Shown here in pieces: positions 3,204-34,702 of a stretch of 64,000 nucleotides of DNA. Every line of letters starts with the position of its first letter. Positions within the stretch are counted from its first letter, which is position 1. The position numbers were made by a program, and so were the translations under genes. Where the stretch lies: sequence record OR805293.1. One strand, given 5' to 3'. The notes under the pieces are model-generated. The model searched no databases and was not told where the DNA came from. It saw nothing but the letters and a program-made list of their open reading frames with translations.

Positions 3204-3620
3204 ATGTCTATATTAGATAAGATTAAGTCTTGTTTGCTTGTTACATTTTACATGTTGCAATGCCAAGGCAATGACAATATTATATGTACAGCAACACAAA
3301 ACAGGAGTTATAACGTGTCAGCAGAATTGAAGCGGTTGTTGGAGATTTTTCCAACCTTTAAATCATTCATTTATGCTAAAGGGGCATATGGCATTGATGT
3401 TTGGAAGGCTACGGGTAGTGTTACTTTGGAACAGGTATCCAATGCTGTTAATGCAGGTAATGCTGAATGGCAATGTAAGGGTGATCCAACTTGCAGCCTG
3501 GAACAAAACAGCATGTATATTTTCATTACTATTCAGGAACCAGACTACACAGGAATGGTTGATATTGATGTTTGTGTAAAGATTACTAACGGTAATGAAG
3601 TAAGTTATCAAATAGCATAA
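3204..3620 (+). CDS. Hypothetical protein (138 aa; start uncertain)
   Basis: ORF ending at a cassette terminator. Confidence 0.75.
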   Translation: MSILDKIKSCLLVTFYMLQCQGNDNIICTATQNRSYNVSAELKRLLEIFPTFKSFIYAKGAYGIDVWKATGSVTLEQVSNAVNAGNAEWQCKGDPTCSLEQNSMYIFITIQEPDYTGMVDIDVCVKITNGNEVSYQIA

Positions 3621-4221: not shown

Positions 4222-4509
4222 ATGGAAGATGATTTAAAAAATATTGTTTCGAAGACTATCTTATCTAATAAAATTAAGATAGTCTCTTTACGTACTGTAG
4301 TAAAAACTCAGTATAAAAGAGTAGACTTCCATTATAAGATAGAATGTGAAAATAGTTCTACAAAACGTAATTTGGTGCTTGCCCGTATATGCAAACCATT
4401 AGAACACACATTAGGTTCAAAACTTGTTTATGTAGATGTTGTGCCTATCAAGTTTAAGAAAGATGAAATGCCATCTACTATTCTATCGGTAAGTGTAATG
4501 ACTAGTTGA
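4222..4509 (+). CDS. Hypothetical basic protein (95 aa)
   Basis: ORF directly after 3839..4210. Confidence 0.7.
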   Translation: MEDDLKNIVSKTILSNKIKIVSLRTVVKTQYKRVDFHYKIECENSSTKRNLVLARICKPLEHTLGSKLVYVDVVPIKFKKDEMPSTILSVSVMTS

Positions 4510-4531
4510 TATTTGGATTTGATTTTTGGAA

Positions 4532-4630
4532 ATATAATAGTAATTCTTATTTGCAATTATAATAAATTCTTGTTTACTTTTAAAATAAAAGCAAATTCTA
4601 GTTGCATAGCTAGCGGCACTGTGCTAGTAT
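4532..4630 (+). promoter_or_regulatory. Two Fur-like boxes (4532, 4555) upstream of a sigma70 promoter
   Basis: ATATAATAGT-A-ATTCTTATTT-GCA; TTGCAT(4602)-17-TAGTAT(4625) with TGn. Confidence 0.7.
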
Positions 4631-4659
4631 ATTAAAAAATAAAGACAGGAGTGTTATAC

Positions 4660-4842
4660 ATGCAAACCAAAGCAACTGAGTTGGCAGTAGGTGATGTTGT
4701 TTTCTACAACGGCATGAAAATGACTATCCAGAAAATTTCTAAAGGTCGGTGTGCAATAGATATTACACTAGTAAATACTTTGGCTAAACTCACATCTTAT
4801 GTGACAGTCGACTACGACGAAGAATTTGAAGAAGTATTATAA
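4660..4842 (+). CDS. Small protein, possible SH3/KOW-like beta-barrel (60 aa)
   Basis: RBS CAGGAG favours ATG 4660; ATELAVGDVV pattern. Confidence 0.8.
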   Translation: MQTKATELAVGDVVFYNGMKMTIQKISKGRCAIDITLVNTLAKLTSYVTVDYDEEFEEVL

Positions 4843-4860
4843 TGCAGAAATTATAGTCAT

Positions 4861-4887
4861 AAGAAAAGGGGCATTGCCCCTTTTCTT
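4861..4887. terminator. Bidirectional terminator
   Basis: aagaaaaggggc-att-gccccttttctt between convergent genes. Confidence 0.9.
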
Positions 4888-5125
4888 ATAGTCCCAACAA
4901 ATGCTTGCCACTTTTGACTTGCATCATACGTACTTTCTTTTTGCGCATTTGCGTTCTTACGTTCAGGCTGTTGGGACCTTTGAAGCTATACAGTATTTCA
5001 GTAGTCCCGTCTTCATAGTTGCGTACCACATTTGCAACAATTTGACTACCTTCCTGGAACGCTTCGATAAACACGCAGTAATTGAAATTTTCCTTGTTAG
5101 CGTTATGTGCGCGTAGTTGCATCAT
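4886..5125 (-). CDS. Hypothetical early protein (79 aa)
   Basis: Minus-strand RBS GCAGGAG; promoter TTGCAT-16-TATACT at 5191-5164. Confidence 0.85.
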   Translation of the reverse strand: MMQLRAHNANKENFNYCVFIEAFQEGSQIVANVVRNYEDGTTEILYSFKGPNSLNVRTQMRKKKVRMMQVKSGKHLLGL

Positions 5126-5269
5126 TTTCTGTTACTCCTGCGTTGTTTTGCTTTGTTATGTGTAGTATACGCTATGTGTGTACTAATGCAAGAATTTTCT
5201 TCCATTTTCTTTCAAATAAAATGTTATTAGCATCTATTTTGTTATAACATTTTCTACTACTTCATGTTT

Positions 5270-5296
5270 TGCAAATAAGAATTATTCGCATTTGCA
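5270..5296. promoter_or_regulatory. Best Fur-box-like palindrome (13-1-13), between divergent promoters
   Basis: TGCAAATAAGAAT-T-ATTCGCATTTGCA; 2 mismatches between arms. Confidence 0.7.
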
Positions 5297-5479
5297 TTCC
5301 TACCTATCTGCCTAAAATTTAGGCAGCCTGGGTGATTGTCTCCCCCGCCCCCATTACTGGTCTCTGTATAAAGATAATAGCATATTTGTATCTGCATGCA
5401 AGTATTTTTTGTAGAATTTTCCTCTTGACATTCCTTGCTATAGGCTACATTATGCACACACAAAGCAGGAGATACCATT

Positions 5480-5860
5480 ATGGCACTCATAGCATTAGTA
5501 GCAACTGCATATGACAAAGAAGGCGATAAGTTCGACTATGTTCGATATCTTAAAGCTCATATCAATTTTGTTTCTGCTCAAGATCAACTGAAAGAATGGA
5601 TCAAAAACAAAATTGATGCAAGTATAGCAGAAGTTAAAATCGGATTACGTGCAGAAATCGAAGTATTGGCCTATTTGGGAAACTATATAAGCCATAGTCA
5701 ACGGATTATTAGTCCCGCCGGGATCATCATGTACATTGTCCTTGATGAGAAGTATGTTAATGAACTTCACGGTCAAATTTCTAATGCAATCGATTGTGAA
5801 GAAAAGAAACATGTAATAAAGAAAGAAGAAAACGTCACTTATATTGATTTTAAAAAATAA
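5480..5860 (+). CDS. Hypothetical protein (126 aa)
   Basis: RBS AGCAGGAG; TTGACA at 5425. Confidence 0.85.
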   Translation: MALIALVATAYDKEGDKFDYVRYLKAHINFVSAQDQLKEWIKNKIDASIAEVKIGLRAEIEVLAYLGNYISHSQRIISPAGIIMYIVLDEKYVNELHGQISNAIDCEEKKHVIKKEENVTYIDFKK

Positions 5861-5861
5861 C

Positions 5862-5890
5862 TTGCATTAGCTGTAATGTATATGTATTAT
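5862..5890 (+). promoter_or_regulatory. sigma70 promoter with no RBS-bearing ORF downstream
   Basis: TTGCAT-17-TATTAT. Confidence 0.7.
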
Positions 5891-5896
5891 GTACTC

Positions 5897-6053
5897 AAGT
5901 TTGCAGCAAGACATATTAATTTGTTTTGCTGTTAGTTGTAACTCCTGCTACCAAGTATGTGTTGAGCTAATGCTCCTGACTTGGTTCTTGGTACACTGGT
6001 TTGGGTGTACCGTTCTTGAGCTGCAAAGGGCTTGCCCGGAGCAGCTTTTTTTT
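5897..6053 (+). ncRNA. Candidate small RNA (~155 nt)
   Basis: Own promoter; hairpins gcaagaca/tgttttgc, ccaagt/acttgg, ggtacac/gtgtacc; terminator agctgc-aaa-ggg(cttg)ccc-gga-gcagct-T7; no RBS-ORF. Confidence 0.55.
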
Positions 6054-6133
6054 GACCAATATTATTCATTTGACAAAAAATAATAATTAAAAATATAATA
6101 GCTTAGTGTATAACTTCCTATATTAGGCTAATT

Positions 6134-6505
6134 ATGAAATTTGTTATTGCTGCTATTGCATTGTCTTTGTCCACACTAGTTTCTGCAGAATCTATTTCTG
6201 AAGTTAAGATAACTAAAGAAACATGCCTTACACTTCTGGAATTATCTAAGATTCATGTTGATATAGTAGTAAATGAACATATGAATGCAATACAAATTGC
6301 ATCTCATATGGATATTGTATCTAATTTATATAAGAATGATAATAGTAAATGGCTTGCGTTCTTGCAGGCTCAAGCAAATATTTCAAAATTAATTGATAAC
6401 GTATATGAGTTTTCATCTACCGAAGAAAGAAAGATTATTCCTCTAGCCATATTTAACGGTTGTATGGAAAGAGTTGGTAATACTTTTGAAATATATAAGA
6501 AATAA
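6134..6505 (+). CDS. Putative exported (periplasmic) protein (123 aa)
   Basis: Sec-type signal MKFVIAAIALSLSTLVSA; two Cys; promoter TTGACA-18-TATAAT at 6070-6099. Confidence 0.85.
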   Translation: MKFVIAAIALSLSTLVSAESISEVKITKETCLTLLELSKIHVDIVVNEHMNAIQIASHMDIVSNLYKNDNSKWLAFLQAQANISKLIDNVYEFSSTEERKIIPLAIFNGCMERVGNTFEIYKK

Positions 6506-6506
6506 T

Positions 6507-6812
6507 ATGTATGTATATGTAGTCCACGGAATAGTCAATACAGGCGTTGAGACTAATATTTGTGATATAGAACGTTACGTTACAGTTAACGACTTCCATG
6601 CTGTAGCAAAGTTTCTTAATTTTAAAGGATATATAGCAGCAAACACAGAATTATATATACGATTAATTGTTTCTGGATTGAATATTAAAAAGAACATATT
6701 AGAAATGAATTTATCCAAAAAAGAATATGTAGTATCAGGCTTTAAAGTTACATCAACTGATATAAATGAAGAATATTACCTGTGTAGAAGGATATTTAAG
6801 TTACATGAATGA
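6507..6812 (+). CDS. Hypothetical protein (101 aa)
   Basis: ATG 1 nt after the upstream stop. Confidence 0.75.
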   Translation: MYVYVVHGIVNTGVETNICDIERYVTVNDFHAVAKFLNFKGYIAANTELYIRLIVSGLNIKKNILEMNLSKKEYVVSGFKVTSTDINEEYYLCRRIFKLHE

Positions 6813-6930
6813 ATTTATATTAAAATCCCTTTTATTAACTTCAGTTGTCAGTGCTGGCATACTACTGTTATTCAGTATTATTTCATTGTTAATGTTTGGC
6901 TTAGCACCGATAGTTCCATTCCTTATTTAA
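6805..6930 (+). CDS. Small hydrophobic membrane peptide (41 aa)
   Basis: MNEFILKSLLLTSVVSAGILLLFSIISLLMFGLAPIVPFLI; 8-nt overlap with upstream gene; below the ORF-track cutoff. Confidence 0.65.
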   Translation: MNEFILKSLLLTSVVSAGILLLFSIISLLMFGLAPIVPFLI

Positions 6931-6951
6931 TTTTAATTATTTGCAAGCAAA

Positions 6952-6975
6952 TGCAAATGCGAATAATTCTTATTA
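6952..6975. promoter_or_regulatory. Fur-box-like site
   Basis: TGC-AAATGCGAAT-A-ATTCTTATTA. Confidence 0.6.
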
Positions 6976-7144
6976 TCCAGCAGGCCACCGTACCTAATCT
7001 TCGTTAGATAAAATCTATTAGAATCTACAAAGTCCATTAAAACGTTCAATTGTACATGGTGGCCAGATCTGCATATACTACACACATGAAGCAAGCAAAC
7101 AGCGCTTCATAAACAAACCCAAATACAGCTAGGAGTTCCAAATC

Positions 7145-7582
7145 ATGTCCAAAGCAACCGTTACCGTCGAGCAATCCGCAATCAAACTGGTTCGCCGCAA
7201 CCTGGAAGGGCACCGGCAAGCCCTGCTGCTGAACGGCGTCGAAGTAGGCAGCAGCGAAGCGTTCTACAAGACCAAAACCCAGCGCACCTGGTCGGCGAAG
7301 ATCGACGCCAACATCAACGGCAAGGACATCGTCCTCGAACAGAAAGGCGTGTTCAGCGCGATCCGGATCGCCCGGGCAATGGAACAAGCAATCCTGTTCA
7401 TCCTGACCGACGGCAAAGAAGGCGCCGAGATGCCGGCCAGCACGCTGAGCAAGGAAGAGCAAACCCACAACCTGGTCAAGGCAGTAGTCCAGGTCGCCGA
7501 CCACGCAGTTCAGTCCGGCGACGCTGCCCCGGCGAAGAAAGGCAGTTCGAAGAAGCGCAAAGAAGCCCAGCCGGAAGCATAA
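7145..7582 (+). CDS. Early hypothetical protein; paralog of 563..1018
   Basis: Promoter TTGTAC-18-TATACT at 7050-7079; RBS AGGAG; strongly G/C-ending codons; shared motifs with 563..1018. Confidence 0.9.
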   Translation: MSKATVTVEQSAIKLVRRNLEGHRQALLLNGVEVGSSEAFYKTKTQRTWSAKIDANINGKDIVLEQKGVFSAIRIARAMEQAILFILTDGKEGAEMPASTLSKEEQTHNLVKAVVQVADHAVQSGDAAPAKKGSSKKRKEAQPEA

Positions 7583-7595
7583 TCCGGACTACACC

Positions 7596-7621
7596 GAGAA
7601 AGCACCGAAAGGTGCTTTCTC
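7596..7621 (+). terminator. Terminator hairpin
   Basis: gagaaagcacc-gaaa-ggtgctttctc. Confidence 0.85.
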
Positions 7622-7630
7622 TATGACTGT

Positions 7631-7710
7631 TAATAGCAAATATTCTTATTTGCATCTAATCTGATATAATAATAACTCTTATTTACAAATCATACTGAAT
7701 ACTGTATTTT
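7631..7710 (+). promoter_or_regulatory. Two Fur-like boxes; the second overlaps the -35 of a sigma70 promoter
   Basis: 21-mers at 7631 and 7664; TTTACA(7682)-17-TATTTT(7705). Confidence 0.55.
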
Positions 7711-8227: not shown

Positions 8228-8299
8228 AAAATAATAAAAATGATTGACACGTACATAAGATCATATTATGCTGTATAAAACAGCAAGGAGTAGATATAC

Positions 8300-8533
8300 A
8301 TGTACCGCAAACTGAATACAAATCCACGCCCAATGCCAAAAACAAAGGCAATTCCAACTAAATTTGTCATTCAGTACACTGCACGGAATAAAGCAACAGA
8401 AAGTTTGTTCAAAAAAAGAACTATTACATTACATGCGTTTGGACGTCTCGATGCACAAACACTCCTATCAAAACATATCCGAAAAAATAATTTGGAATTA
8501 GGTGTAATTATTGATTTCGGTGAAACAGTTTAG
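8300..8533 (+). CDS. Small basic early protein (77 aa)
   Basis: Promoter TTGACA-17-TATGCT at 8244-8272; RBS AAGGAG. Confidence 0.85.
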   Translation: MYRKLNTNPRPMPKTKAIPTKFVIQYTARNKATESLFKKRTITLHAFGRLDAQTLLSKHIRKNNLELGVIIDFGETV

Positions 8534-8658: not shown

Positions 8659-8697
8659 GTAAACAGTTGCACAAAACCATAAGCAGGAGTGTTAAAA

Positions 8698-8994
8698 ATG
8701 AACCAAGTGAATAACTCCGAAGAGATGGCGTACATCCGCAATCTGCTTCAGTCTGAAGATGCAGTAAAATACTTTGCTCGCAAAGTCAACGACCTCATCG
8801 GCAAAGAGGCATTCGAGCGGCTCCTTAACGGCTTGTCCTACGAGGAGAATGTTGCACTGAACCTGATGATCGAAAACAATCTCGCCAGCTTGCACAGCGA
8901 CGGGTTTGTCGGTATCAAGTTCGATCTCAAACTAGAAGACGTGCGTGCAGACGTCGACTTCACCGACGAAGGCTTCGAGCTGGAGGAAGAGTGA
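8698..8994 (+). CDS. Small, highly acidic early protein (98 aa)
   Basis: RBS AGCAGGAG favours ATG 8698; about 22 D/E versus 9 K/R; ends DVDFTDEGFELEEE. Confidence 0.9.
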   Translation: MNQVNNSEEMAYIRNLLQSEDAVKYFARKVNDLIGKEAFERLLNGLSYEENVALNLMIENNLASLHSDGFVGIKFDLKLEDVRADVDFTDEGFELEEE

Positions 8995-9761: not shown

Positions 9762-10031
9762 ATGGACGCGCGCAGCCTGCTTAGCCTTATCGAAGACCTC
9801 CCTATAGCTGTCTTCGGCAGCACAATGGATATTGTTCATCGAGTCAATTTTGAAGCTCTGGACAATGCCGCCCACACCGACGGGGTAAAAGTCCACGAAG
9901 ACGGAACCAACCGTTATACAGACGCTTTTGTCGATTGTTGGCTCCGCAGCGTCGAAACAGTTTTGGCCTGTTGCGATTTTGTGACCGAGGATGCCGCTAA
10001 GTGGTATATCGAGCACGGTGTCAAGTTTTGA
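9762..10031 (+). CDS. Small acidic early protein (89 aa)
   Basis: Promoter TAGACA-17-CATACT at 9701-9729; leader ...acggagtaca like that of gene 563. Confidence 0.85.
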   Translation: MDARSLLSLIEDLPIAVFGSTMDIVHRVNFEALDNAAHTDGVKVHEDGTNRYTDAFVDCWLRSVETVLACCDFVTEDAAKWYIEHGVKF

Positions 10032-10129
10032 CATCCTCTGCCTCGCCTGCAGATAAAAAGGTTGACGTAGACTAGCAATGGACACATAATAATTACAACG
10101 CAACGCAACTAGCCCTGGAGGGCAAAACT

Positions 10130-10279
10130 ATGTGCAACATCCAATGCATGAACAGCAAAGCCGGCGAGTCCTACGCATGGATTTGGAGCGATAGCGATAG
10201 CGATATCTGCTACGAAGTTATCTTCAGGCATGGCCAGGTCCTCACCCAGGTTTGGCTCGGCTATGATATCGTAGCCTAA
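10130..10279 (+). CDS. Hypothetical protein (49 aa)
   Basis: Promoter TTGACG-17-CATAAT at 10062-10090; RBS GGAGGG; MCNIQCMNSKAGESYAWIW... Confidence 0.7.
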   Translation: MCNIQCMNSKAGESYAWIWSDSDSDICYEVIFRHGQVLTQVWLGYDIVA

Positions 10280-10328
10280 CACCAACCGAAGCCCCGTCCC
10301 AGGCGGGGCTTCACCGAAGGAAAAGATC

Positions 10329-10538
10329 ATGATCGAACAACTGAAAGACATGCTCGTAGCGCAACGCATGCGCATGAACCAACTCGAAAAACTGCGCTAC
10401 ACCGGACGCGTCGCTAGCGAGTTGCATGCCCACGCCAGGGAATTGTGTGAAGCCTTGGAACTGGCAATTGCAAATGCCCAGTGCCTGGAAATGCGCAAGT
10501 TCGAAGAAGCCGCCCTGCACGCCCTGTTCGCACAATAA
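10329..10538 (+). CDS. Hypothetical helical protein (69 aa)
   Basis: RBS AAGGA; GC-rich codons. Confidence 0.8.
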   Translation: MIEQLKDMLVAQRMRMNQLEKLRYTGRVASELHAHARELCEALELAIANAQCLEMRKFEEAALHALFAQ

Positions 10539-10571
10539 CCCACCACGCACAACCCGACAAGGAAACCAACC

Positions 10572-11063
10572 ATGAGCACTACCATCCCCGATTCGATTCA
10601 TCCGAGTGACCTTCCCGAAATCGGCCAGCCCCTGGCTGATGGAACCTTCTTTGCCCGCCAATGGCTCAATGGCAAGGAATACGCCTACGTCGATCTCGGC
10701 AAAAGCTCCGAGTTCACTGAAGAATGGGGCGAGTATGGGCAGGATGTGAACGGCGCCGACGGCTACCGAGACGGAGCTTCGAACACGGTCGCCATGGCTG
10801 AAGCTGGCAGCCCGATTGCCAAGCAAGCCATGGCGACCGGAGAAGGCGTATTCATTCCCTCTGTTCTGGAACTGGCTCTTCTGTTCTCAGCAAATCAAGC
10901 AGGCGAGCTGTCTGGTTTCGCAGATCGCTGGTACTGGTCGAGTTCGCAGTACTCCGCCTGCGGCGCCTTCCGCATGCACTTCGGCGACGGCGAGGCTAGT
11001 GTCGCCATCAAGAGCAGCGCCTGGTTGGTCCGCCCCGTTCGCAAGATTCTCATCCTTCAGTAA
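10572..11063 (+). CDS. DUF1566 / Lcl C-terminal (C-type lectin-fold) protein
   Basis: PxIGQP...G.FF N-terminus, PSxxELxLL and WYWSSSQYS...AF.M.F.DG....K.....VRPVR pattern typical of this family in Pseudomonas temperate phages. Confidence 0.8.
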   Translation: MSTTIPDSIHPSDLPEIGQPLADGTFFARQWLNGKEYAYVDLGKSSEFTEEWGEYGQDVNGADGYRDGASNTVAMAEAGSPIAKQAMATGEGVFIPSVLELALLFSANQAGELSGFADRWYWSSSQYSACGAFRMHFGDGEASVAIKSSAWLVRPVRKILILQ

Positions 11064-11140
11064 TATAGCCCCGGAGATAACACGATGAACATGCACCTCT
11101 CCAAGCATTGTCTGCGCCAACGCGGGACCAAGGAACAATC

Positions 11141-11389
11141 ATGAGCATTGCAAGCTACCTCTTGTTGTCCACCATTGTCTTCAACAACAACACCTACGCT
11201 CGTTCGACGACAGTGGACACCATTGTGGTTCGTGACCTTAGCAAGGAAGACTGCGAGGCGCTCAAGCGTGAGCGCGAAGCAGTTGTGAAGAACATCCGGG
11301 CAAGGAACTTCGGTAGCTCTGGCGATACGAGTAGTATCACTGTGGGCTTTTCCAAACATAGCTGCACAAAGATGGAGGGTACGAAATAA
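11141..11389 (+). CDS. Hypothetical protein, hydrophobic N-terminus (82 aa)
   Basis: RBS AAGGA favours ATG 11141; overlaps a 19-aa mini-ORF at 11085..11144. Confidence 0.75.
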   Translation: MSIASYLLLSTIVFNNNTYARSTTVDTIVVRDLSKEDCEALKREREAVVKNIRARNFGSSGDTSSITVGFSKHSCTKMEGTK

Positions 11390-11529
11390 CTCAACTGGCC
11401 ACGGCGAGCAAACATTGCCTGGCAGGTGCTAGCTGAACGACTGGCGGAACAATAAATAAAGGTTGACGTGCGTCTAGCGGCGGATGCATAATAGCTACAA
11501 GACAACACAGCAAGCCCCGGAGGGCCGCC

Positions 11530-11730
11530 ATGAGCCAGATCGTAGATGTCAAGCAAATTGCAATTGATGCAAACCGTCGCCCCGCCTACAATGCGGTCAT
11601 GGTGCGCTGGTTGATTCAGGAAGCTGAATTGCACCGTAGCTGCGGACGCACTGCTACCCTGTTCTGCATCGTTCGCAACCGCCCTGACGGCACACAGCGC
11701 CAGCTTGTGCAGCTTGTGGCTAGCGAGTAA
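11530..11730 (+). CDS. Hypothetical protein (66 aa)
   Basis: Promoter TTGACG-18-CATAAT at 11463-11492; RBS GGAGGG. Confidence 0.8.
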   Translation: MSQIVDVKQIAIDANRRPAYNAVMVRWLIQEAELHRSCGRTATLFCIVRNRPDGTQRQLVQLVASE

Positions 11731-11760
11731 CCTCAATCACCCTACGCCCAGGAGGCCGTC

Positions 11761-11925
11761 ATGAATGCTGCACTGGCCAGACTTCAAAACGAACGTTGCA
11801 TGTTACTTCGCCGGATGCTTTGCAGCAAATGGCACGGATTCTGTTTTGCAGGTCACCCCTGGGCAGAACAAGCCCGCAATCTGCACGACGAATCCAAGTG
11901 CATCCGAGAACATTACAGTAAGTAA
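11761..11925 (+). CDS. Hypothetical protein (54 aa)
   Basis: RBS AGGAGG; MNAALARLQNERCMLLRR...; below the ORF-track cutoff. Confidence 0.75.
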   Translation: MNAALARLQNERCMLLRRMLCSKWHGFCFAGHPWAEQARNLHDESKCIREHYSK

Positions 11926-11959
11926 TCCAATCCCACTGGATCTTACTGAGGATAAGATA

Positions 11960-12064
11960 ATGACCTACGCAGAACTAATAAAGAAACTACATAACATAGA
12001 AGCTGGTCATTATCTTTCCAATAATGAAGTTAAGTTTCAAAACACAGGCAAGCAGGAGAACTAA
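11960..12064 (+). CDS. Hypothetical peptide (34 aa)
   Basis: RBS GAGGA; 3' part of track ORF 11765..12064. Confidence 0.55.
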   Translation: MTYAELIKKLHNIEAGHYLSNNEVKFQNTGKQEN

Positions 12065-12065
12065 A

Positions 12066-12362
12066 ATGAATTGCGAACATTTTTTCCTCAGTGCAGTAAA
12101 AGAACTTCTGTCCCTGTACCACATTAAGAGTACTATTCAACCGTCTTCTGATAACCTCGAAGAATTGGTAGTAGTTATTACCGATACTGTTTTTGGTACT
12201 ATCAGATACGTTGGCAATAACACCGGATCAGTTATGTGTTATACGATGGGCGGTAATTACCCGTTCTATGATACTGAGTGTTATTCCAACCGAACTATGA
12301 TAGATTGTGTTATGTTGATATCAGTTTGGTATTCAATGTTCCCGACATTTGATAATAAGTAA
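12066..12362 (+). CDS. Hypothetical protein (98 aa)
   Basis: RBS AGCAGGAG favours ATG 12066. Confidence 0.8.
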   Translation: MNCEHFFLSAVKELLSLYHIKSTIQPSSDNLEELVVVITDTVFGTIRYVGNNTGSVMCYTMGGNYPFYDTECYSNRTMIDCVMLISVWYSMFPTFDNK

Positions 12363-20622: not shown

Positions 20623-22368
20623 TTAACCTACCCTAATCCATACGTATGCACATTGCCACGGAGATTGGTTATTATGTTTTCCGTCGCCGCCGACAGAAGA
20701 AGTTAGAGGAGCTGTGGTAACGCTCTGGAATCCGTAACCGTCTTCGACCCTAGCAGATTGACCGCCGACTGAACCGAATCTACCCGATTGCGAAACGTTA
20801 TTTCCGAAACCTTGTATATGCTGATGCGCTGGCATCTCTGCTACAGTAAGTTTATGGAAATAAGTTCCTCCTGTTGATCCGGCAGCATATCCACCCGAAT
20901 CTCCATTTGCATCAGTAGTAGATCCGTTCCCGACTATAGATCTGCCCTGTGCATACGGATTCCAGACCCCGAATCCTAAATAAGTTGCTGGGTTTGCCGA
21001 ATTAGTTGCGTTAATGTATACAGAACCTATAGGATATACTAATTCTCTAGTAGCTGCAATGGCAGTTAAAATTTTCTGATCTACTTGGTCTTGGGTATAA
21101 ACGGTAGGAAGATTGCCAGTATGCCATATTCTTTGACCGTTTATATATAGTGCGCCGTCGTTTACGCCATCTGTATGCAGTCGAACATCGTAATCAGTAG
21201 AAGAGTTCGTGGCATGGTGAAAATCTAAATACCTAGCTATTTCTGTAACACCAGATGTACTAACAACAGGAATCTTGTTAGCCATATTTCCAGGAACACC
21301 AGGTGCTATAACATCGTGTGACGCTGCTGTGCCTAATCCAACTACAGTTGTGTTCATTGTAACGTTTGTAGTACCGTCTAATACTACTGAACCTAAAACA
21401 TTTCCAGTTAGTGTTAATGTTCTGCCAAACGTCCATTTATCTGCAGAAGCTGCTCTGGTTGCATTAGTCGCACTTGATGCATTACCTACGAAATTTACAG
21501 AATACATGTTTCTATAGCGCCGAGTAGTAGAACCTAAGTCATACGTATTATCTATTACAGGCATCAAATGAGAATTTAAACCTTGATTTGTGCCAGTTCC
21601 TAGTGTTAATAACGTCGTATTTACATCTTGGCCGAAGAATCTTGTTACTCTATATGAAGTACCACCTATAATCCATGTGCCCCTACAGAATAAATCGTTA
21701 TTAGGTCCGTTTTCTAATGCTATAACAGAAGAACCATTAGTAAAAGTTATACCACCAGAATTAATCCATGCTTTCTTTGTATATAAATTATCCCATTGTT
21801 TTGCAGACGAACCCAAACTAGATGATGTTATAAACTGACAAGGATTCGGCATAGTCGATTGGGTTTCGGGTAATATGTCGCCTTGAACTGAAGTATTTCC
21901 TACAACTGTAAGAGCAGTTCTGTTAGAACTAGATGTACATTTTCTTAAAGTTGCTTCTGTTCCGAAAAAGCCTACTGCATAGATATTTTTAAATCTAAGG
22001 GTAGGAGACCCTATATTAATTGTATTATCAACCTTTGGCAATAGATCTTGTATTAATGCTCCGCCAATAGGAGTCCACATTTCGTTAGATCTATCTGCAC
22101 TAGTGTTATCGTTGGGAGATAGAGGGTCTGCTCCTTTCCATACTTTAAGTATTTCCTGCTGGGTATCATACCACAGTTGGCCCTTAATGGCTCCACGAGG
22201 CGGAATTGTATTGGCAAAATTTTCTAAATGCCTAATTGTACTCTGTGCTATTTCTCCGCCATACGGTGATATGTCTTTGCCTAGTAATGGCAAAGTATAA
22301 TTCTCTAATATCGTTTGGTCTGCAACAGTAATAGGGGTGCCGTTACTTTTGGAAATATTATATGACAT
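20623..22368 (-). CDS. Baseplate wedge / tail-pin protein (gp10-like C-terminus)
   Basis: YPIGSVYINA...NPATYLGFGVW...GG...HKLTxAEMPAHQH...HNN.SPW..AYVWIR. Confidence 0.75.
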   Translation of the reverse strand: MSYNISKSNGTPITVADQTILENYTLPLLGKDISPYGGEIAQSTIRHLENFANTIPPRGAIKGQLWYDTQQEILKVWKGADPLSPNDNTSADRSNEMWTPIGGALIQDLLPKVDNTINIGSPTLRFKNIYAVGFFGTEATLRKCTSSSNRTALTVVGNTSVQGDILPETQSTMPNPCQFITSSSLGSSAKQWDNLYTKKAWINSGGITFTNGSSVIALENGPNNDLFCRGTWIIGGTSYRVTRFFGQDVNTTLLTLGTGTNQGLNSHLMPVIDNTYDLGSTTRRYRNMYSVNFVGNASSATNATRAASADKWTFGRTLTLTGNVLGSVVLDGTTNVTMNTTVVGLGTAASHDVIAPGVPGNMANKIPVVSTSGVTEIARYLDFHHATNSSTDYDVRLHTDGVNDGALYINGQRIWHTGNLPTVYTQDQVDQKILTAIAATRELVYPIGSVYINATNSANPATYLGFGVWNPYAQGRSIVGNGSTTDANGDSGGYAAGSTGGTYFHKLTVAEMPAHQHIQGFGNNVSQSGRFGSVGGQSARVEDGYGFQSVTTAPLTSSVGGDGKHNNQSPWQCAYVWIRVG

Positions 22369-22371
22369 AAA

Positions 22372-22977
22372 TTACCCCATTTGCACTCTAACAGTATATT
22401 GTATTTGTAATGCTCTATTAGATGATTTTTGTATAGGATGGAATATTACATGAGTAATCATTATTGCTTCACTTTGATCTAAATTTCCGGCTATACTGGG
22501 CGGACCTACATATAACGCAATTTCATCGAATACAGAACTATCTTTATTATCTTCTGCAAAACTGGGAGCTCTGTCTATAATTTGTTGTTGTAGTCCTGCT
22601 TCATCATATGCAAGAGTAGTGGTTACTTTTAAATCTGAAAAGTTTGTACTTCCTAAAATAACTTCTATTTTATTTTGAAGTGTATTATCTATTTCTTTTT
22701 TAAATGTTTCGTTATATAACGAATCGTCGGGATTGCGTATAATAGAAACATTGGGTTCCCTATAAATTATTTCACCCTCAGCAGTCACTCGAGTACCGCC
22801 ATTGCCGAAAGCCATATATCTTACGTGCCCGTTATCTTGTCCAGCCAATGCAGATACTATAGCAGCAGCCAAATTACCGAAATGAATTGCATTCTTTTTG
22901 CTAAGAAGTATTTCACCCGTGTCTTTATCTACAATAGTAAGATGCCCAATAGCACGGATAGTTCCACTATCTTGCAT
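22372..22977 (-). CDS. Baseplate protein (gp8-position)
   Basis: Conserved jumbo-phage pattern KKNAIHFGN...MAFGNGG...FDEIALY...THVIFHPIQKSSNR..QI.YTVR. Confidence 0.65.
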   Translation of the reverse strand: MQDSGTIRAIGHLTIVDKDTGEILLSKKNAIHFGNLAAAIVSALAGQDNGHVRYMAFGNGGTRVTAEGEIIYREPNVSIIRNPDDSLYNETFKKEIDNTLQNKIEVILGSTNFSDLKVTTTLAYDEAGLQQQIIDRAPSFAEDNKDSSVFDEIALYVGPPSIAGNLDQSEAIMITHVIFHPIQKSSNRALQIQYTVRVQMG

Positions 22978-32100: not shown

Positions 32101-34702
32101 GTGATCTCAATATTTTTATAGTTTTAGTAGGTTTCCCGTCGTTATCTAGGACTATAGTAAATTCCACATTCTGTGCAAGGGTAGATTTATTGTATTCTAC
32201 TCTTATGTCAAATATACCCGGTTCCAATTCTTCGGGTGTTACGCTTAGTTCGTATTCTTTTTGCGAAGAATCCGATACTACAAATCTATCTATTACTCTT
32301 TGTTTAGAATTTCCGTCAAATGGCACCCAGGTATGCTCATATGTGGGATTAGAGCCAGATATTGTATAATTCCATTGTTTAAAATAATAATAACCTTTTA
32401 TTGGTTCGAATTCATTTCCGTTAAAGTATTGGAATACATCCATGTGAAGATCGTGTCTAAACACAATATCGGATATTTGACCTAAGTTTTTTACTTCAAT
32501 AGGAAATCCTAGTATTTCATCGTCGTATGCACTTTCTTCATTTATTTTATACGAAAAAATCTTAGATCCAGCAAATGTAGATTGCGGGAAACTATCCAAC
32601 GAAATTGCATTGTTATTAGAGTCTAAATCGGTATAATATAAATTAAATAAAGGAGCTTGGTTAGCATTTGTTTTTCTATTATAAGTCCTTTCCCATTGTA
32701 CTCCAGTATAATAGAACATGTCTCCTGCAAATGTATCTCCTTCAGTTACTAATACTACATCTCCTTTAGCAACTTTTGTGTATTTGTTAGGAACAGGGAT
32801 TATACTGTTTACTACAGTATTGTCTGGCTGTTCTACTTTAACTATTTTCCATATATAGTCTGTTGCATTTAGTGTAAGAGTTTCGTTATCTCTTACTATT
32901 AATTTAACAATACTATCGTCGGGCACTATATTTTTAAATTCTACTAATAGTGCATTATCTTGTTCTATTGTAAAACTAACAAAATCATCTGCAGGATTAT
33001 ATAAGTAGTCATACGATACTGGATCATTGTTTGCATCTCTTGTATATGCATCTATTTGAATACCTATTATATGATTACCTATATTTTGTTGAGTAAAATT
33101 AAAAGTAAAATCATTATTAAATAAAAATGTTCTTCTGGCGCCTGGTCCTTCTATTGCTTCGGCAGCAGGCTTCTTATACATGTTTACTTTATTGTTTACA
33201 TTTATTTCTACTTGGTCACCAGGCAATAACCCATCTATGTTATCATTTATGATTACATCAAATGCTAAATTAGTAGGTAAGGTAGTTCCTGTAATGGTTA
33301 CAATGCTATTATTCTTACCAACAGGTGTATTTAATGTTTCTACATTAAATGTAAACGAAGTTCTCGGCTGTCTTATAGATGTTCCTCTGTTAACTACATC
33401 TATAGTCTTAATAGTTCCTACGCTAGATGGTGTATAAAATTTATATTCAACGCCATTTGTTATGTTTTCAAAACTAACATTGTTTATATCATACGAAATG
33501 GGATTCCATTGCAATCCTTTTGTGTCTGCAATGAAATTCATTTGGTTTAATTCATCTTCGTACGAATACCATTCGGGATTGTAAAACATTTTGTTACCAC
33601 GTTTTACAATTACAAATATATCATCTGTATCAGTAAATGGTTTTCGTAATATTATATTGTATGGCGCTGCATCTGCAATAAATGTATCTACAATTGGATA
33701 AGTTATTGTGCTATTAGATAAGAAAATTAACTTATCTTGATCTTCTAATAGTTTTCCATCAATAGTGTATGATGCAGAATTTGATATACTAGAAATATTA
33801 TCAGACTCGGCTACTAGATTAACTTCACCTAAGTAATTATTTCCAGATTTAAATAACTCTATATCTCTATCAAACTCTATAATAGGTCTTCTTGCCTTAA
33901 CTGCGTTGTTATACGTAGATGTATTGGTTGCAGAGGCAGAAGTTGCCATTACAGATTTATGATACCATTTGTTAGTGCGGGACCATGCGTTGCCATCTCT
34001 GCAGCCGCGTTCTATAGTGATATAATCTACAGAGCCAACAGTATCTACTAAGTGAGATTCATCTTTTACTAAAATAATACCTTTTCCGACACCTTCTACA
34101 GTTAATGGTCTATTAAATGAAGACGAGTTAGTATATTGTATTCTGAGTCCGTTAGAAAGCTGAATGGTATTACCGTTTTCTAATGTTATACTGGCGTTCT
34201 TTTTTCCTATTATATTGTTTATTATCCATTCGTCTGCGTTTATACCACTTTCGTTTTCTACTGTTAACATAATAACAGGCAGCCGATCTTCTATCCAATA
34301 ATAATTTTGGAAATTTATAAATTTATCTAAATCTATCGGCGGACCGAAAGAATAATATCCACCAGAAAATAAAGTGTCATTATTCTTTGTATTGGCACCA
34401 TAATAATTTAACCTGTTTAACAAGTCTTGGTAAAACATTATATTTGTTTGATCTAACGTGGTAGAATCAACACTATACGAGGTTGCTTCTAACTGATACC
34501 AAGTCCGTTCTTTAGTAGGTTCTGCTAAGTAATAATCATTTATAGGATCATGTCTACCGGGAACTCTTCTACCTATGTAAGCAGTTATATCCTCTACATT
34601 CTTTTTAGAAAATAGTTGCTCAAATGTAGCTAAAAAGAATCTTTTTTGGGTATCTGTTCTAAATATACCAGGTAACTTGTTAAACGTTTTTAATGTTGCC
34701 AT
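23129..34702 (-). CDS. Giant baseplate wedge protein (gp7-like, 3857 aa)
   Basis: Directly after gp6; LP.IFRT..QK.F..ATFEQLF N-terminus; GYGY beta-sandwich motif; YIKEIKPYxTKIR pattern of T4-like jumbo wedge proteins. Confidence 0.8.
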   Translation of the reverse strand: MATLKTFNKLPGIFRTDTQKRFFLATFEQLFSKKNVEDITAYIGRRVPGRHDPINDYYLAEPTKERTWYQLEATSYSVDSTTLDQTNIMFYQDLLNRLNYYGANTKNNDTLFSGGYYSFGPPIDLDKFINFQNYYWIEDRLPVIMLTVENESGINADEWIINNIIGKKNASITLENGNTIQLSNGLRIQYTNSSSFNRPLTVEGVGKGIILVKDESHLVDTVGSVDYITIERGCRDGNAWSRTNKWYHKSVMATSASATNTSTYNNAVKARRPIIEFDRDIELFKSGNNYLGEVNLVAESDNISSISNSASYTIDGKLLEDQDKLIFLSNSTITYPIVDTFIADAAPYNIILRKPFTDTDDIFVIVKRGNKMFYNPEWYSYEDELNQMNFIADTKGLQWNPISYDINNVSFENITNGVEYKFYTPSSVGTIKTIDVVNRGTSIRQPRTSFTFNVETLNTPVGKNNSIVTITGTTLPTNLAFDVIINDNIDGLLPGDQVEINVNNKVNMYKKPAAEAIEGPGARRTFLFNNDFTFNFTQQNIGNHIIGIQIDAYTRDANNDPVSYDYLYNPADDFVSFTIEQDNALLVEFKNIVPDDSIVKLIVRDNETLTLNATDYIWKIVKVEQPDNTVVNSIIPVPNKYTKVAKGDVVLVTEGDTFAGDMFYYTGVQWERTYNRKTNANQAPLFNLYYTDLDSNNNAISLDSFPQSTFAGSKIFSYKINEESAYDDEILGFPIEVKNLGQISDIVFRHDLHMDVFQYFNGNEFEPIKGYYYFKQWNYTISGSNPTYEHTWVPFDGNSKQRVIDRFVVSDSSQKEYELSVTPEELEPGIFDIRVEYNKSTLAQNVEFTIVLDNDGKPTKTIKILRSLSATDVIQTYTYSKEALPDNALGYYQIPQQLENNPNNLEVNEYSSNELTNHFVSIMTNQIGFKGDPYSSNNNYRDTAEDKSLGTFILQNRSPLLKTMLVSSSEELNINSAIRFARDEYTRYKDKFIKYAKELIAAPLNQNTNPVNIDALFTYVINRVTSTFEYNGAFTQSYMAAWGDVYDEYNFSSASVGNTLLVPTNNILGKMDSSVLVFRRTGTSVDYNTLTIDKDYTLSYSNNNLVVKLSSTPSNTSYIVRIYNNILSAKIPATPSKIGCYPVYQPKIIVDNSYVTPTEVILGHDGSKIPTYGDIRDDLLLEFETRIYNNIADKFRLDYNLLLKLDDVKPTKFYENGYTLQQYNEIVKPYFLKWCLKNSLNYKLYSGFNSLNWKTWNYRPVSNDSIGSWRGLYKYYYNTLTPNKTPWEMLGFVEKPTWWDEEYNGDYTSQNTDMWTDIENGIIRRGNRAGTHEKYKRTGLVPNLIPSDTSGDLKTPEELGIVPQLSNQEIETLQDEWIFGDNSPVEEAWYTNSEWPFVQLELLYLMKPADFGERYWNPLDDTRAPINAKQYISSSTYTRIANSNTYAHGEVVNGNIVLNSGYQQYVFDRLSFMGKQDITYNFGSKIRSLDVCLAHRLAGYTNVDTLNVYADSISGGSTNSSMLLPNENIHVRVYTGKPITEYVFSGVAIRVNEYGKFEVRGYDVLNPVFKVVPRSTLVSGTTINVGGTTSNFTIYDTNVQYNYGDVVRYNGVYYQCVVIAAQGKFNQDNWMRLKSLPATGGMTVNYINEGDYSEFYEIEYGSELDTPQDVFDFLIGYGQYLELNGWKFNEIDQTTGEVLNWVTSAKGFLFWATTQWAPNNTLFVAPGASKITLEVNEGYPEKVERISNGVYSILDQNGYAISPNDTIIDRDRRTISVSHESDQIGIYLFRVSTSDTEHAILFDNKTIFNDTIYDPLLYSRQKRLQLRGIRTNDWYGKFEADGYLIQDDNLLQNFENLTDSIWHYYDTENTLDNPIIEQTARHLIGFQDREYLNNLRITGDQQYLFYKGMISQKGTKQSVDKLLRSEFIKSNENIQIYEEFAFKLADFGATNSNAQLEVLIDGDLVKSDPQIVELSYPVSYGTGKVSEVRVLSSEMIYTTTPIIVFATPEEANAGLDPNVDAYLQGNQLNSPNNSIVEEIRATGQVVLKNGRIDSVTITEPGYGYIKPPKIAIIYNQTVITIDKLISIIKNKIDEDSPYDMIITIDSDDNERWLSKPNGRMPVIVGNEIKYNDRLVPTTKQLDGNIPTAGYVNTKDVTHQILYPKNIFTLWERKDVSKPSLTSYIWVGNASSVGIDWGVFVIYSGLTPATNALYPYCVINNMVYSYTVDSDGVIDAIFDKEGKQVTNVPIQNPLFFKNVRFKNNATVNVTSGKVWIDSINSDNDWAVAVVSGSTITNIRSRQNLVDSKLFENAYFYDKDTKQTIDFLPVYDPVKGLIPGTADRNIHYKSEIDPTTYSVSANSANIDDELAFTDSEVGRLWWDTSTCRYLQYEQPGKLDGSETKEQILEYRRDNWGKLFPGSVINVYEWVSSPFTPDLYNGTGTPKSLTDYVVRYDTNSAGQATPIYYYWVKGKQEIPNNIKSRNMTSTSVENLITNPKSQGYKWFSFIGNNSFVFSNVSKTINGKTPVFQVNYRYTKNINEKHTEWKLLREGDEVSVIPTYLWNRLVDSLVGYNINGDIVPDPTLSEFSKLGIKVRPRQSMIDNRMAARKVFVQNANSLLSTISIKDFNPAWADGLASSVLWRYVNWYADGFNQFNTTPVKQVSTVGELTGLVGKLKDGDIVKLVRPEEFTLYQYSNQNFTLIGRQNSAIQLLPAIYTVSRSYTNDNALRELIFALYNNVFKDANLVMRNLVFFALINYILSEQQNLDWVFKTTYIKVNQEGESLTQQESVTTDPIQSFISYIKEIKPYTTKIRDLGVKYNVPMDIANGTAYDYDSLYDWPDDHEGEQAPFRPIEVPRLFDINSLYDRVQCGYITKPNYIDLGDQTFIGTGGQVVLIANTPNDEFIALDGISQYQLGANKDISRITSVTINGQEIEGYTFTTILNATFIILPSTPDAGDVIIVNYTDIKSVWKIKVDGKTITKEQYDVEINENGYLQVTFKSNTLIKIGSKIKLYSGTEFTQTPLEEMRLEYNARQPGKVLKPIFDLAIDPAGKIAGGWGIPKWGQLRWGIPGTIQEGNRQLWTEYLQYSGAAGRYILYQTDLQRDILSAAPINGSYPYSSFTERLYESSAGERDVLFQFNERFGDEYGCDYEGKVIDAKDFEYIFSRPWDSTKWDEYAWDASTATYVITPNYTETSATVISEGKTTFVIRYVVDITGVTLNGSSTQYTATKGSNFTSIEVPGAVEGDEIVFTFNPVTNTFNSDTSKPIIDGAYFEDTNVREGIPEEQALVSPTENMVIIVDSNAKTTEVQYVVTNTDTSNPFVKIVLTEKIVLQDIIGLVINGDPNTEDKLKFNIDNNGINTVVIAYPTSFSTGDIISVVYKDNYTSQTTVANDYRFDTNSVVRDNTQGYITVDLRNTKQNKDINTWDTFAWDPSIDSPENADSVYLLPIDMPTIANPDEVVAQASGQLTYKFVDITANGVDTMIHTGMNILPNRVQGVYSSGVAMYGYTVVVDNSGITPELVINFEIAPSAGTVITVKYQSYSIMKLDDYVSYVMNKYNITSVTTSEYKLQTIDMFVAANKRMISVSNNLYTRKSKEMLYTNTKLFTVDTSILNFVGETVYINGISKTKDKDYTIEFTNITGDNAKLLVVYKGTLNAGDIIRIDWTETNIQKVTDIVNNSWVAVFNEQHNFINPVTMQGDNVVIKYPAKPLSFRVHLDEMGETHYVRISDYYSTRLAKPLKLTDKSIELVDASAIVDPSSSKPGVVWIGTERIEFLYKRGNKLHGLTRGSLGTSVYTGTNGDTTVPLYTRVFDGSYKQEQEDTGKYIWENNNGGLALSTTPWAIFLQNRPGSGLTP

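Follow-up and report, generated by a model that had tools for sequence, protein, structure and literature searches.

A candidate non-coding RNA of PA5oct-like Pseudomonas jumbo phages with an exposed complement to a Shine–Dalgarno variant of early genes

In a 64,000-nucleotide stretch of record OR805293.1 (the window; positions below refer to it unless stated otherwise), an element directly downstream of an early gene probably encodes a genuine non-coding RNA shared by PA5oct-like phages, be it an independent small RNA or one derived from a 3′ UTR. The predicted RNA is ~157 nt long (5897–6053, plus strand), close to the figure of about 155 nt given in an earlier note on this DNA, and a single-stranded linker in its computed fold is complementary to a Shine–Dalgarno (SD) variant concentrated in the surrounding early arm. 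More tentatively, we propose that the RNA may pair with the SD sequences of CAGGAG-led early genes of the same phage and thereby silence them, in trans and possibly also in cis. The start site and exact ends of the RNA, any dependence on Hfq, and all of the regulation discussed below are what we infer from the analyses that follow.

The transcription unit and its fold

Positions 5400–6600 are 100% identical to positions 191400–192600 of Pseudomonas phage Deifobo (OR805293.1), a PA5oct-like Pseudomonas jumbo phage of the genus Wroclawvirus. The same segment is 96.6–98.8% identical to ten further Wroclawvirus records (PA5oct, represented twice, MIJ3, PAC2, Paride, Cassandra, Ettore, Callisto, phi30-2, and phi30-3), and a search of the phage collection with it returned these 11 records (96.6–100% identity) and no further match. 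In PA5oct, the element occupies positions 32668–32866, within the 39-kb terminal repeat, which is rich in early genes (PMC7318152). The Deifobo record also bears a “CRISPR” repeat annotation at 158039–158336, close to where the terminal repeat probably begins. GC-rich islands are found at 500–1020, 7046–7600, and 10000–12000 of the window, where the GC content reaches 54% over 2 kb, compared to 30–35% for the phage, and possibly represent acquired genes; an ORF at 10572–11063 gave a sub-threshold match to Lcl_C (22.7 bits, with a cut-off of 34.9).

The upstream early gene (5480–5860, plus strand, 126 aa) is preceded by the SD sequence GCAGGAG (5465–5471). Immediately after it, a promoter-like site can be read from the sequence at 5862–5890 (plus strand), with TTGCAT at 5862–5867, a 17-nt spacer, and TATTAT at 5885–5890, as had been claimed; the start of the RNA is predicted near 5897. 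A generic promoter scan did not list this site, because its −35 box matches three of the six consensus bases. However, TTGCAT or TTGCAA boxes located 16–17 nt from TAnTAT also precede the early genes at 1119, 1703, 3255, and 4602, so the promoter of the element is of the phage's own early type. In Callisto, the −35 box is TTGCGT. The next gene has a promoter of its own, a perfect TTGACA-18-TATAAT at 6070–6099, which also agrees with the earlier reading. No terminator was found by scanning between the stop codon of the upstream gene (5858–5860) and position 6018, and read-through mRNA of this gene must therefore carry the element as its 3′ UTR. The element and the upstream coding gene share one terminator, an arrangement characteristic of 3′ UTR-derived small RNAs.

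Elsewhere in the window, two copies of one intergenic cassette (1028–1140 and 1620–1725) each contain a GC-rich terminator hairpin, followed by repeated operator-like GCAAAT...ATTTGC boxes that resemble Fur boxes and by a TTGCAT-16-TAGTAT promoter, with TCTCCTG abutting the −35 box.

The minimum free energy of the predicted RNA is −56.5 kcal/mol, and with pairing probabilities near 1 it folds into three hairpins followed by a terminator, in agreement with the several hairpins described before. Relative to dinucleotide shuffles, the fold z-score of segment 5895–6056 is −3.57, with one of 200 shuffles folding as well, and folding of the element is favoured on the plus strand over the minus strand by 11 kcal/mol, an advantage due to G-U pairs. 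Hairpin 1 (5903–5932, plus strand, like the other parts of the RNA) consists of 11 bp and an 8-nt loop and contributes −14.5 kcal/mol when folded alone. It is followed by an open linker of 17 nt (5933–5949), which is single-stranded in the fold and exposes CUCCUGCU, with CUCCUGC at 5942–5948; freeing 5942–5948 costs 0.8 kcal/mol. Hairpin 2 (5950–5985, −12.9 kcal/mol) contains a second CUCCUG (5973–5978), and since freeing these bases costs 5.6 kcal/mol, this copy is sequestered. Hairpin 3 (5990–6011; 8 bp, 6-nt loop, −11.1 kcal/mol) is invariant in all relatives. Both anti-SD motifs pointed out in the earlier note, ACTCCTGCTA at 5941–5950 and TGCTCCTG at 5971–5978, are thus in place, but only the first offers its CUCCUGC for pairing, while the second is buried in hairpin 2. 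The occurrence of two CUCCUG copies within ~30 nt is not significant alone: a rough estimate based on the 18 plus-strand copies gives ~0.5 such pairs expected per 100 kb, and two were seen.

The RNA ends in an intrinsic terminator (6018–6053), the stem of which (6018–6047, −15.0 kcal/mol) is followed by U8. The terminator is built from a 7-bp base, a 3 × 3 internal loop, and a GGG-CUUG-CCC tip, and it was missed by a simple scanner because of the internal loop. The CUUG tetraloop is as originally described, while the T run comprises eight residues (6046–6053) rather than seven; in phage Ettore, there are nine.

An alternative use of the same arms had been envisaged, in which the 5′ end of the RNA pairs with the 5′ arm of the terminator and so creates a terminator/antiterminator switch. 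The 8-nt complementarity between TTTGCAGC (5900–5907) and GCTGCAAA (6020–6027) is real, but a switch between the two structures finds no support: forcing the pairing yields −47.4 instead of −56.5 kcal/mol (9.1 kcal/mol worse), and hairpin 1, the first to form during transcription, sequesters 5903–5907. Moreover, the downstream gene is served by a separate consensus promoter past the terminator, leaving no gene for an attenuator to control. The antiterminator model was rejected on the folding energy, and we consider it extremely improbable.

Nearly the same region could be viewed as coding for a 64-aa protein (5889–6083) or for a shorter internal peptide, and the 64-aa frame is in fact annotated in 5 of the 11 matching records (Deifobo, PAC2, Paride, Cassandra, and Ettore). 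However, this frame has no SD sequence, the ATG from which it starts overlaps the −10 box, and the stop codon (6081–6083) lies beyond the terminator, 28 nt past the last terminator U. Among relatives, the annotated frame is 195, 171, or 168 nt long, since a change at 6057 creates a stop codon and the U run has acquired a 1-nt insertion. Of the substitutions within the frame, three are non-synonymous and one is synonymous; by comparison, third codon positions account for 13 of the 14 variable sites in the upstream gene. No PHROG family matched the frame, and PA5oct, the annotation of which was curated with RNA-seq, has no gene at the element. The small-protein reading, which we regard as very improbable, was rejected since an SD sequence is absent, the stop codon is outside the transcript, and the frame is not kept among relatives. 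This bears out the view that no RBS-led ORF lies inside the element, the sole ORF being the one just described, and on sequence grounds we read the element as non-coding.

The 10 aligned relatives are ~99% identical over the element. There are five variable sites in its 157 nt (3.2%), compared to 8.6–10% in adjoining intergenic DNA. Four of these sites are unpaired, and the remaining one, an A/G difference at 5913 in hairpin 1, exchanges an A-U pair for a G-U pair, so that none breaks a pair. An A/C difference at 6040 falls within the internal loop of the terminator, and the linker (5933–5949) is invariant in the 10 phages. While 100% of the pairs are kept across the relatives, a check of covariation, as advised in the earlier note, revealed no two-sided (compensatory) pair change among the 10 aligned phages, which represent five distinct sequences only; the near-identity of the relatives accounts for the lack of covariation both for the fold and for the seed–target pairs discussed below.

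Searches beyond this group were negative. No match was obtained in IMG/VR with either flanking protein, in metagenomes with the upstream flanking protein, or in metagenomes with the hairpin 3 pattern, and an 18-nt seed pattern had a single match in IMG/VR, which was unrelated and at chance level. A second copy of the element was found neither in the whole Deifobo record (BLAST and covariance model) nor in PA5oct (BLAST). Rfam models applied at the gathering score had no hit anywhere in the window, a lenient Rfam scan produced chance-level matches only (E about 1–3, 10–16 bits), and a tRNA/tmRNA scan detected none at the element.

RNA-seq contig depth over the element

Four RNA-seq runs from 2020 (referred to as X1–X4) cover the element. 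At 5913, 6057, and 6062, the contigs have G, T, and A, respectively, which are the PA5oct alleles; they thus very probably originate from the PA5oct infection study. The figures given here are contig depths summed per bin, a coarse quantity that is flat along each contig and carries neither strand nor ends. In the upstream-gene bin, 5693–5853, depth was 223, 638, 485, and 319 in X1, X2, X3, and X4, respectively. In bin 5854–6014, the corresponding values were 2952, 638, 5978, and 21174, and in bin 6015–6175 they were 709, 638, 4150, and 2367. At 5854–6014, therefore, depth was 12–66 times that of the upstream-gene bin in three of the four runs, while X2 was flat. In X1, X3, and X4, short high-depth contigs were placed exactly over the predicted RNA. 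The ncRNA appears more abundant than the neighbouring mRNA. The long contigs break at 5944–5976, and in one X3 contig the sequence is unrelated as far as position 5952, so the abundant form could start inside the element; if so, that species would lack the exposed seed.

As a whole, the idea of a discrete non-coding RNA unit has fared well: the element combines a phage-type promoter with robust hairpins and a terminator, lacks a translatable ORF, and is covered by high-depth contigs in this bin. Four ncRNAs, ncRNA001–004, have been described in the transcriptome of PA5oct (8263–8498, 21951–22401, 103065–103368, and 246116–246734 of that genome; PMC7318152). The element overlaps none of them, and the RNA is thus unreported in that paper.

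A 15-bp hairpin with T runs on both sides (4858–4890) lies between the convergent genes 4651–4842 (plus strand) and 4886–5125 (minus strand) and looks like a bidirectional terminator. Contig depth in bin 4727–4887 was raised in all four runs (4482–7635).

The depth profile could also be explained by a passive structured 3′ end, which would stabilise the upstream mRNA against 3′ exonucleases and persist as an abundant decay fragment, its anti-SD match being a coincidence. We consider this rather unlikely. The element is the 3′ UTR of gene 5480–5860 in any case, there being no intervening terminator; raised depth also marks the terminator region in bin 4727–4887; the two neighbouring CUCCUG copies are, as mentioned, not unusual by themselves; and the small RNAs of phage PAK_P3 provide a parallel, being processed 3′ UTRs (PMC10914365). 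On the other hand, a phage early-type promoter stands directly in front of the element, and ~120 nt of additional conserved structure exceeds the needs of a terminator. Furthermore, a seed of 7–9 nt is located in the sole long unpaired linker and matches the SD variant that dominates locally, with flank complementarity that goes beyond chance (see below).

The CAGGAG variant and predicted pairing with the linker

The anti-SD idea was originally derived from GCAGGAG leaders, and this sequence is indeed present before genes 1771, 5480, 8698, 12066, and 4886–5125 (minus strand), 7–9 nt 5′ of the start codons. Two more GCAGGAG-led genes lie just upstream of the window. As judged with a crude gene caller, CAGGAG is found upstream of 11 of the 42 genes in Deifobo 181–198.3 kb, while the flanks contain 3 CAGGAG-led genes out of 76 (in the 31 kb before) and 3 out of 50 (in the 52 kb after). 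The pattern CAGGAG-N6-10-ATG has 19 matches in the 288-kb record, 12–13 of which are in 173.1–198.1 kb; a reversed control had four matches genome-wide. The ncRNA gene lies inside this 25-kb cluster. The anti-SD sequence CCUCC of the 16S rRNA tail does not pair with the C that precedes AGGAG. In the linker, G5947 pairs with this C. The common C could, however, stem from the descent of duplicated CA-rich leader cassettes and not from selection for pairing.

The leaders of 3315, 4886–5125 (minus strand), 5480, and 8698 are CA-rich just 5′ of the SD sequence (ACACAA, AACAAC), and similar leader sequence is seen at 33400–33440 of the stretch L019 (position 16746 of which is Deifobo 166746). These leaders resemble the A-rich motifs bound by Hfq/Crc near Pseudomonas start codons and could link the genes to host Hfq.

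Pairing of the linker was evaluated by duplex folding against 167 start regions, with a threshold of −14 kcal/mol. Eleven start regions were predicted to pair at −14 to −20 kcal/mol, and all 11 are in the early arm. The best contiguous duplex is predicted at 3302–3314 (plus strand), upstream of gene 3315–3620: it has an energy of −20.3 kcal/mol and comprises 13 bp (one of them G-U), extending from the SD sequence through the base that precedes the GTG start codon. The GCAGGAG of gene 4886–5125 (5135–5141, minus strand) is predicted to pair at −20.4 kcal/mol, the leader of a gene located 4.7 kb upstream of the window at −18.9 kcal/mol, and the GCAGGAG of gene 5480–5860 (5465–5471, plus strand) at −18.4 kcal/mol. 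For the remaining plus-strand GCAGGAG sites, the predicted energies are −16.6 kcal/mol (gene 1771–2019, site 1755–1761), −16.7 kcal/mol (gene 8698–8994, site 8683–8689), and −16.6 kcal/mol (gene 12066–12362, site 12052–12058). At the same sites, the 16S rRNA tail reaches −7 to −8 kcal/mol only.

The contribution of chance was estimated by keeping the CUCCUG core fixed and either shuffling its flanks or replacing them with random genomic flanks. With shuffled flanks, 1.9% of the sequences reached the observed mean energy and 0.3% reached the observed count at −16 kcal/mol or lower; with random genomic flanks, the respective values were 5.5% and 2.1%. The results thus show that complementarity extends modestly beyond the CUCCUG core. 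The anti-SD proposal accordingly survives in part: the exposed CUCCUGC is complementary to an SD variant concentrated in the surrounding early arm, and the second motif is unavailable within hairpin 2. Pfam and PHROG scans of the predicted target proteins detected no recognisable function.

Any RNA that contains CUCCU is a match to SD sites, and targets in the host have to be considered as well. As a proxy, we used P. paraeruginosa, which is closely related to the host, was identified through a host-like end of an RNA-seq contig, and served for motif counts only. In its genome, the pattern GCAGGAG-N5-10-ATG occurs 162 times, compared to 50 for a control pattern, and the 7-nt seed matches about 100 start regions; the seed is thus not phage-specific. 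These counts would be consistent with a small RNA that is directed at the host, where it would pair with GCAGGAG-type start regions or titrate an RNA-binding protein such as Hfq. The usual Hfq-binding module consists of a terminator U tail and a U-rich stretch before it, which the U8 tail of the element and the preceding U-rich stretch fit, and high abundance would suit a sponge. A small RNA of phage lambda that acts on the host has been described in a preprint and provides a precedent (10.1101/2024.10.31.621285). We nevertheless find a host-directed function unlikely, since the density of GCAGGAG start sites is ~16 times higher in the phage early arm (7 per 17 kb) than in the P. paraeruginosa proxy (162 per 6.4 Mb), and the longest matches found, of 13 bp, involve phage leaders.

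The SD sequence of the upstream gene is itself among the predicted partners, and in the read-through mRNA it is part of the same molecule as the linker. In the computed fold of this mRNA (5460–6053), SD bases 5464–5471 are predicted to pair with 5942–5949 with a probability of 0.92–1.0, and both the SD core of gene 5480 and the linker segment 5942–5949 are invariant in 10 phages. Action in cis, which the earlier note did not consider, is therefore possible according to this model, besides action in trans. A second predicted helix, 5477–5483 with 5871–5877, covers the start codon with a probability of 0.85; it is broken in PA5oct, phi30-2, and Ettore, and is thus probably not meaningful.

In the extreme case, the element would act in cis only, as a 3′ UTR that folds back on the SD sequence of gene 5480–5860 and limits translation or triggers decay, with no separate small RNA involved. 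In addition to the predicted pairing and the invariance of its partners, such an arrangement has a precedent in Staphylococcus aureus icaR, whose long 3′ UTR contains an anti-SD sequence, the complement of the SD sequence in the same mRNA (PMC3868564). We consider a purely cis-acting element quite unlikely, as the jump in contig depth speaks for a species that greatly outnumbers the mRNA, the element is preceded by a promoter of its own, and ten other leaders are also predicted to pair with the linker at −14 kcal/mol or stronger. The breakage of the start-codon helix in three relatives also argues against it, and long-range pairs in minimum-energy folds are unreliable.

A proposed model of early-gene silencing and its relation to known systems

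In the mechanism that we tentatively propose, silencing by SD pairing would proceed as follows. An early ncRNA of ~155 nt would be made from its own TTGCAT-type promoter and would also be carried as the 3′ tail of the read-through mRNA of gene 5480–5860, both forms ending at one terminator. It would accumulate well above the adjoining mRNA. The linker between hairpins 1 and 2 would present the seed to the (A/G)CAGGAG sites of roughly a dozen early-arm genes, and since the predicted pairing covers the SD sequence and sometimes extends up to the start codon, it would block ribosome loading. The build-up of the ncRNA would then lead to falling translation of the early gene set, with most targets being reached in trans and the RNA's own upstream gene possibly in cis. 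A broader version, which we put forward with considerable reservation, is that (A/G)CAGGAG is a private SD variant that marks the early block, and that one abundant small RNA encoded within the block silences the class after the early phase, while autoregulating its upstream gene in cis.

The proposed RNA has several traits in common with Hfq-type trans-acting small RNAs, including prophage-encoded DicF: a putative promoter of its own precedes it, its short seed is exposed, hairpins stabilise it, a long U tail completes the intrinsic terminator, and more than one target is predicted, with pairing at the SD sequence and start codon. In silico, the U8 tail exceeds the six residues characteristic of this group, and the accessible seed is complementary to start regions; with respect to the promoter, there is the promoter-like site at 5862–5890, and contig depth rises in the bin that starts at 5854. 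The difference is that the seed here is the complement of the SD core itself, which makes its specificity lower than that of typical small RNA seeds, and that both the start site and the targets are predicted ones. Masking of the ribosome-binding region of a phage's own mRNA in trans is known for the c4 antisense RNA of phages P1 and P7. However, c4 RNA is processed out of a transcript that it shares with its only target, and it controls the immunity of a temperate phage, whereas the present phage is a virulent jumbo phage in which early genes would be silenced as an entire class. In this last respect, the closest functional analogy is RegB of phage T4, an endoribonuclease that cuts within the SD sequence, so that early mRNAs sharing a GGAG signature are inactivated as a class. 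There is no homology involved: the RegB effector is a protein that cuts the SD sequence, while the effector proposed here is an RNA that would pair with it. To our knowledge, targets have been established for very few of the small RNAs found in virulent phages.

As in icaR, a 3′ UTR anti-SD sequence is complementary to the SD sequence of the same mRNA in silico, with a probability of about 1; unlike icaR, the element has its own promoter, apparently exceeds the mRNA by far in abundance, and is complementary to numerous further leaders. Abundant ncRNAs have been observed in virulent Pseudomonas phages before. PA5oct ncRNA001–004 (PMC7318152) and PAK_P3 ncRNA1/2 (PMC10914365) were all detected by RNA-seq and have no assigned function; the abundant PAK_P3 RNAs are processed 3′ UTRs with no start site of their own. 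Two of the PA5oct ncRNAs are in the same terminal-repeat early arm as the element, with no sequence or model similarity to it within the genome.

A tandem repeat of TTCATTTCCTTA in 3–4 copies is present at Deifobo 166746–166790. The UUCCUUA of this repeat is complementary to AAGGA-type SD sequences, which are the more frequent kind towards the left of the arm, and from its sequence the locus may encode a second anti-SD RNA with a different seed.

PA5oct has been proposed as a model jumbo phage and is a therapy candidate. Its expression shifts from early to middle genes with the use of host RNA polymerase (PMC7318152). Even if the pairing model fails, the RNA merits annotation, and the 64-aa “hypothetical protein” of several relatives should be removed. 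With this element, the post-transcriptional shut-off of early genes in PA5oct-like phages becomes a concrete hypothesis and, if the hypothesis is true, class-wide silencing through (A/G)CAGGAG would be an RNA-based counterpart of T4 RegB.
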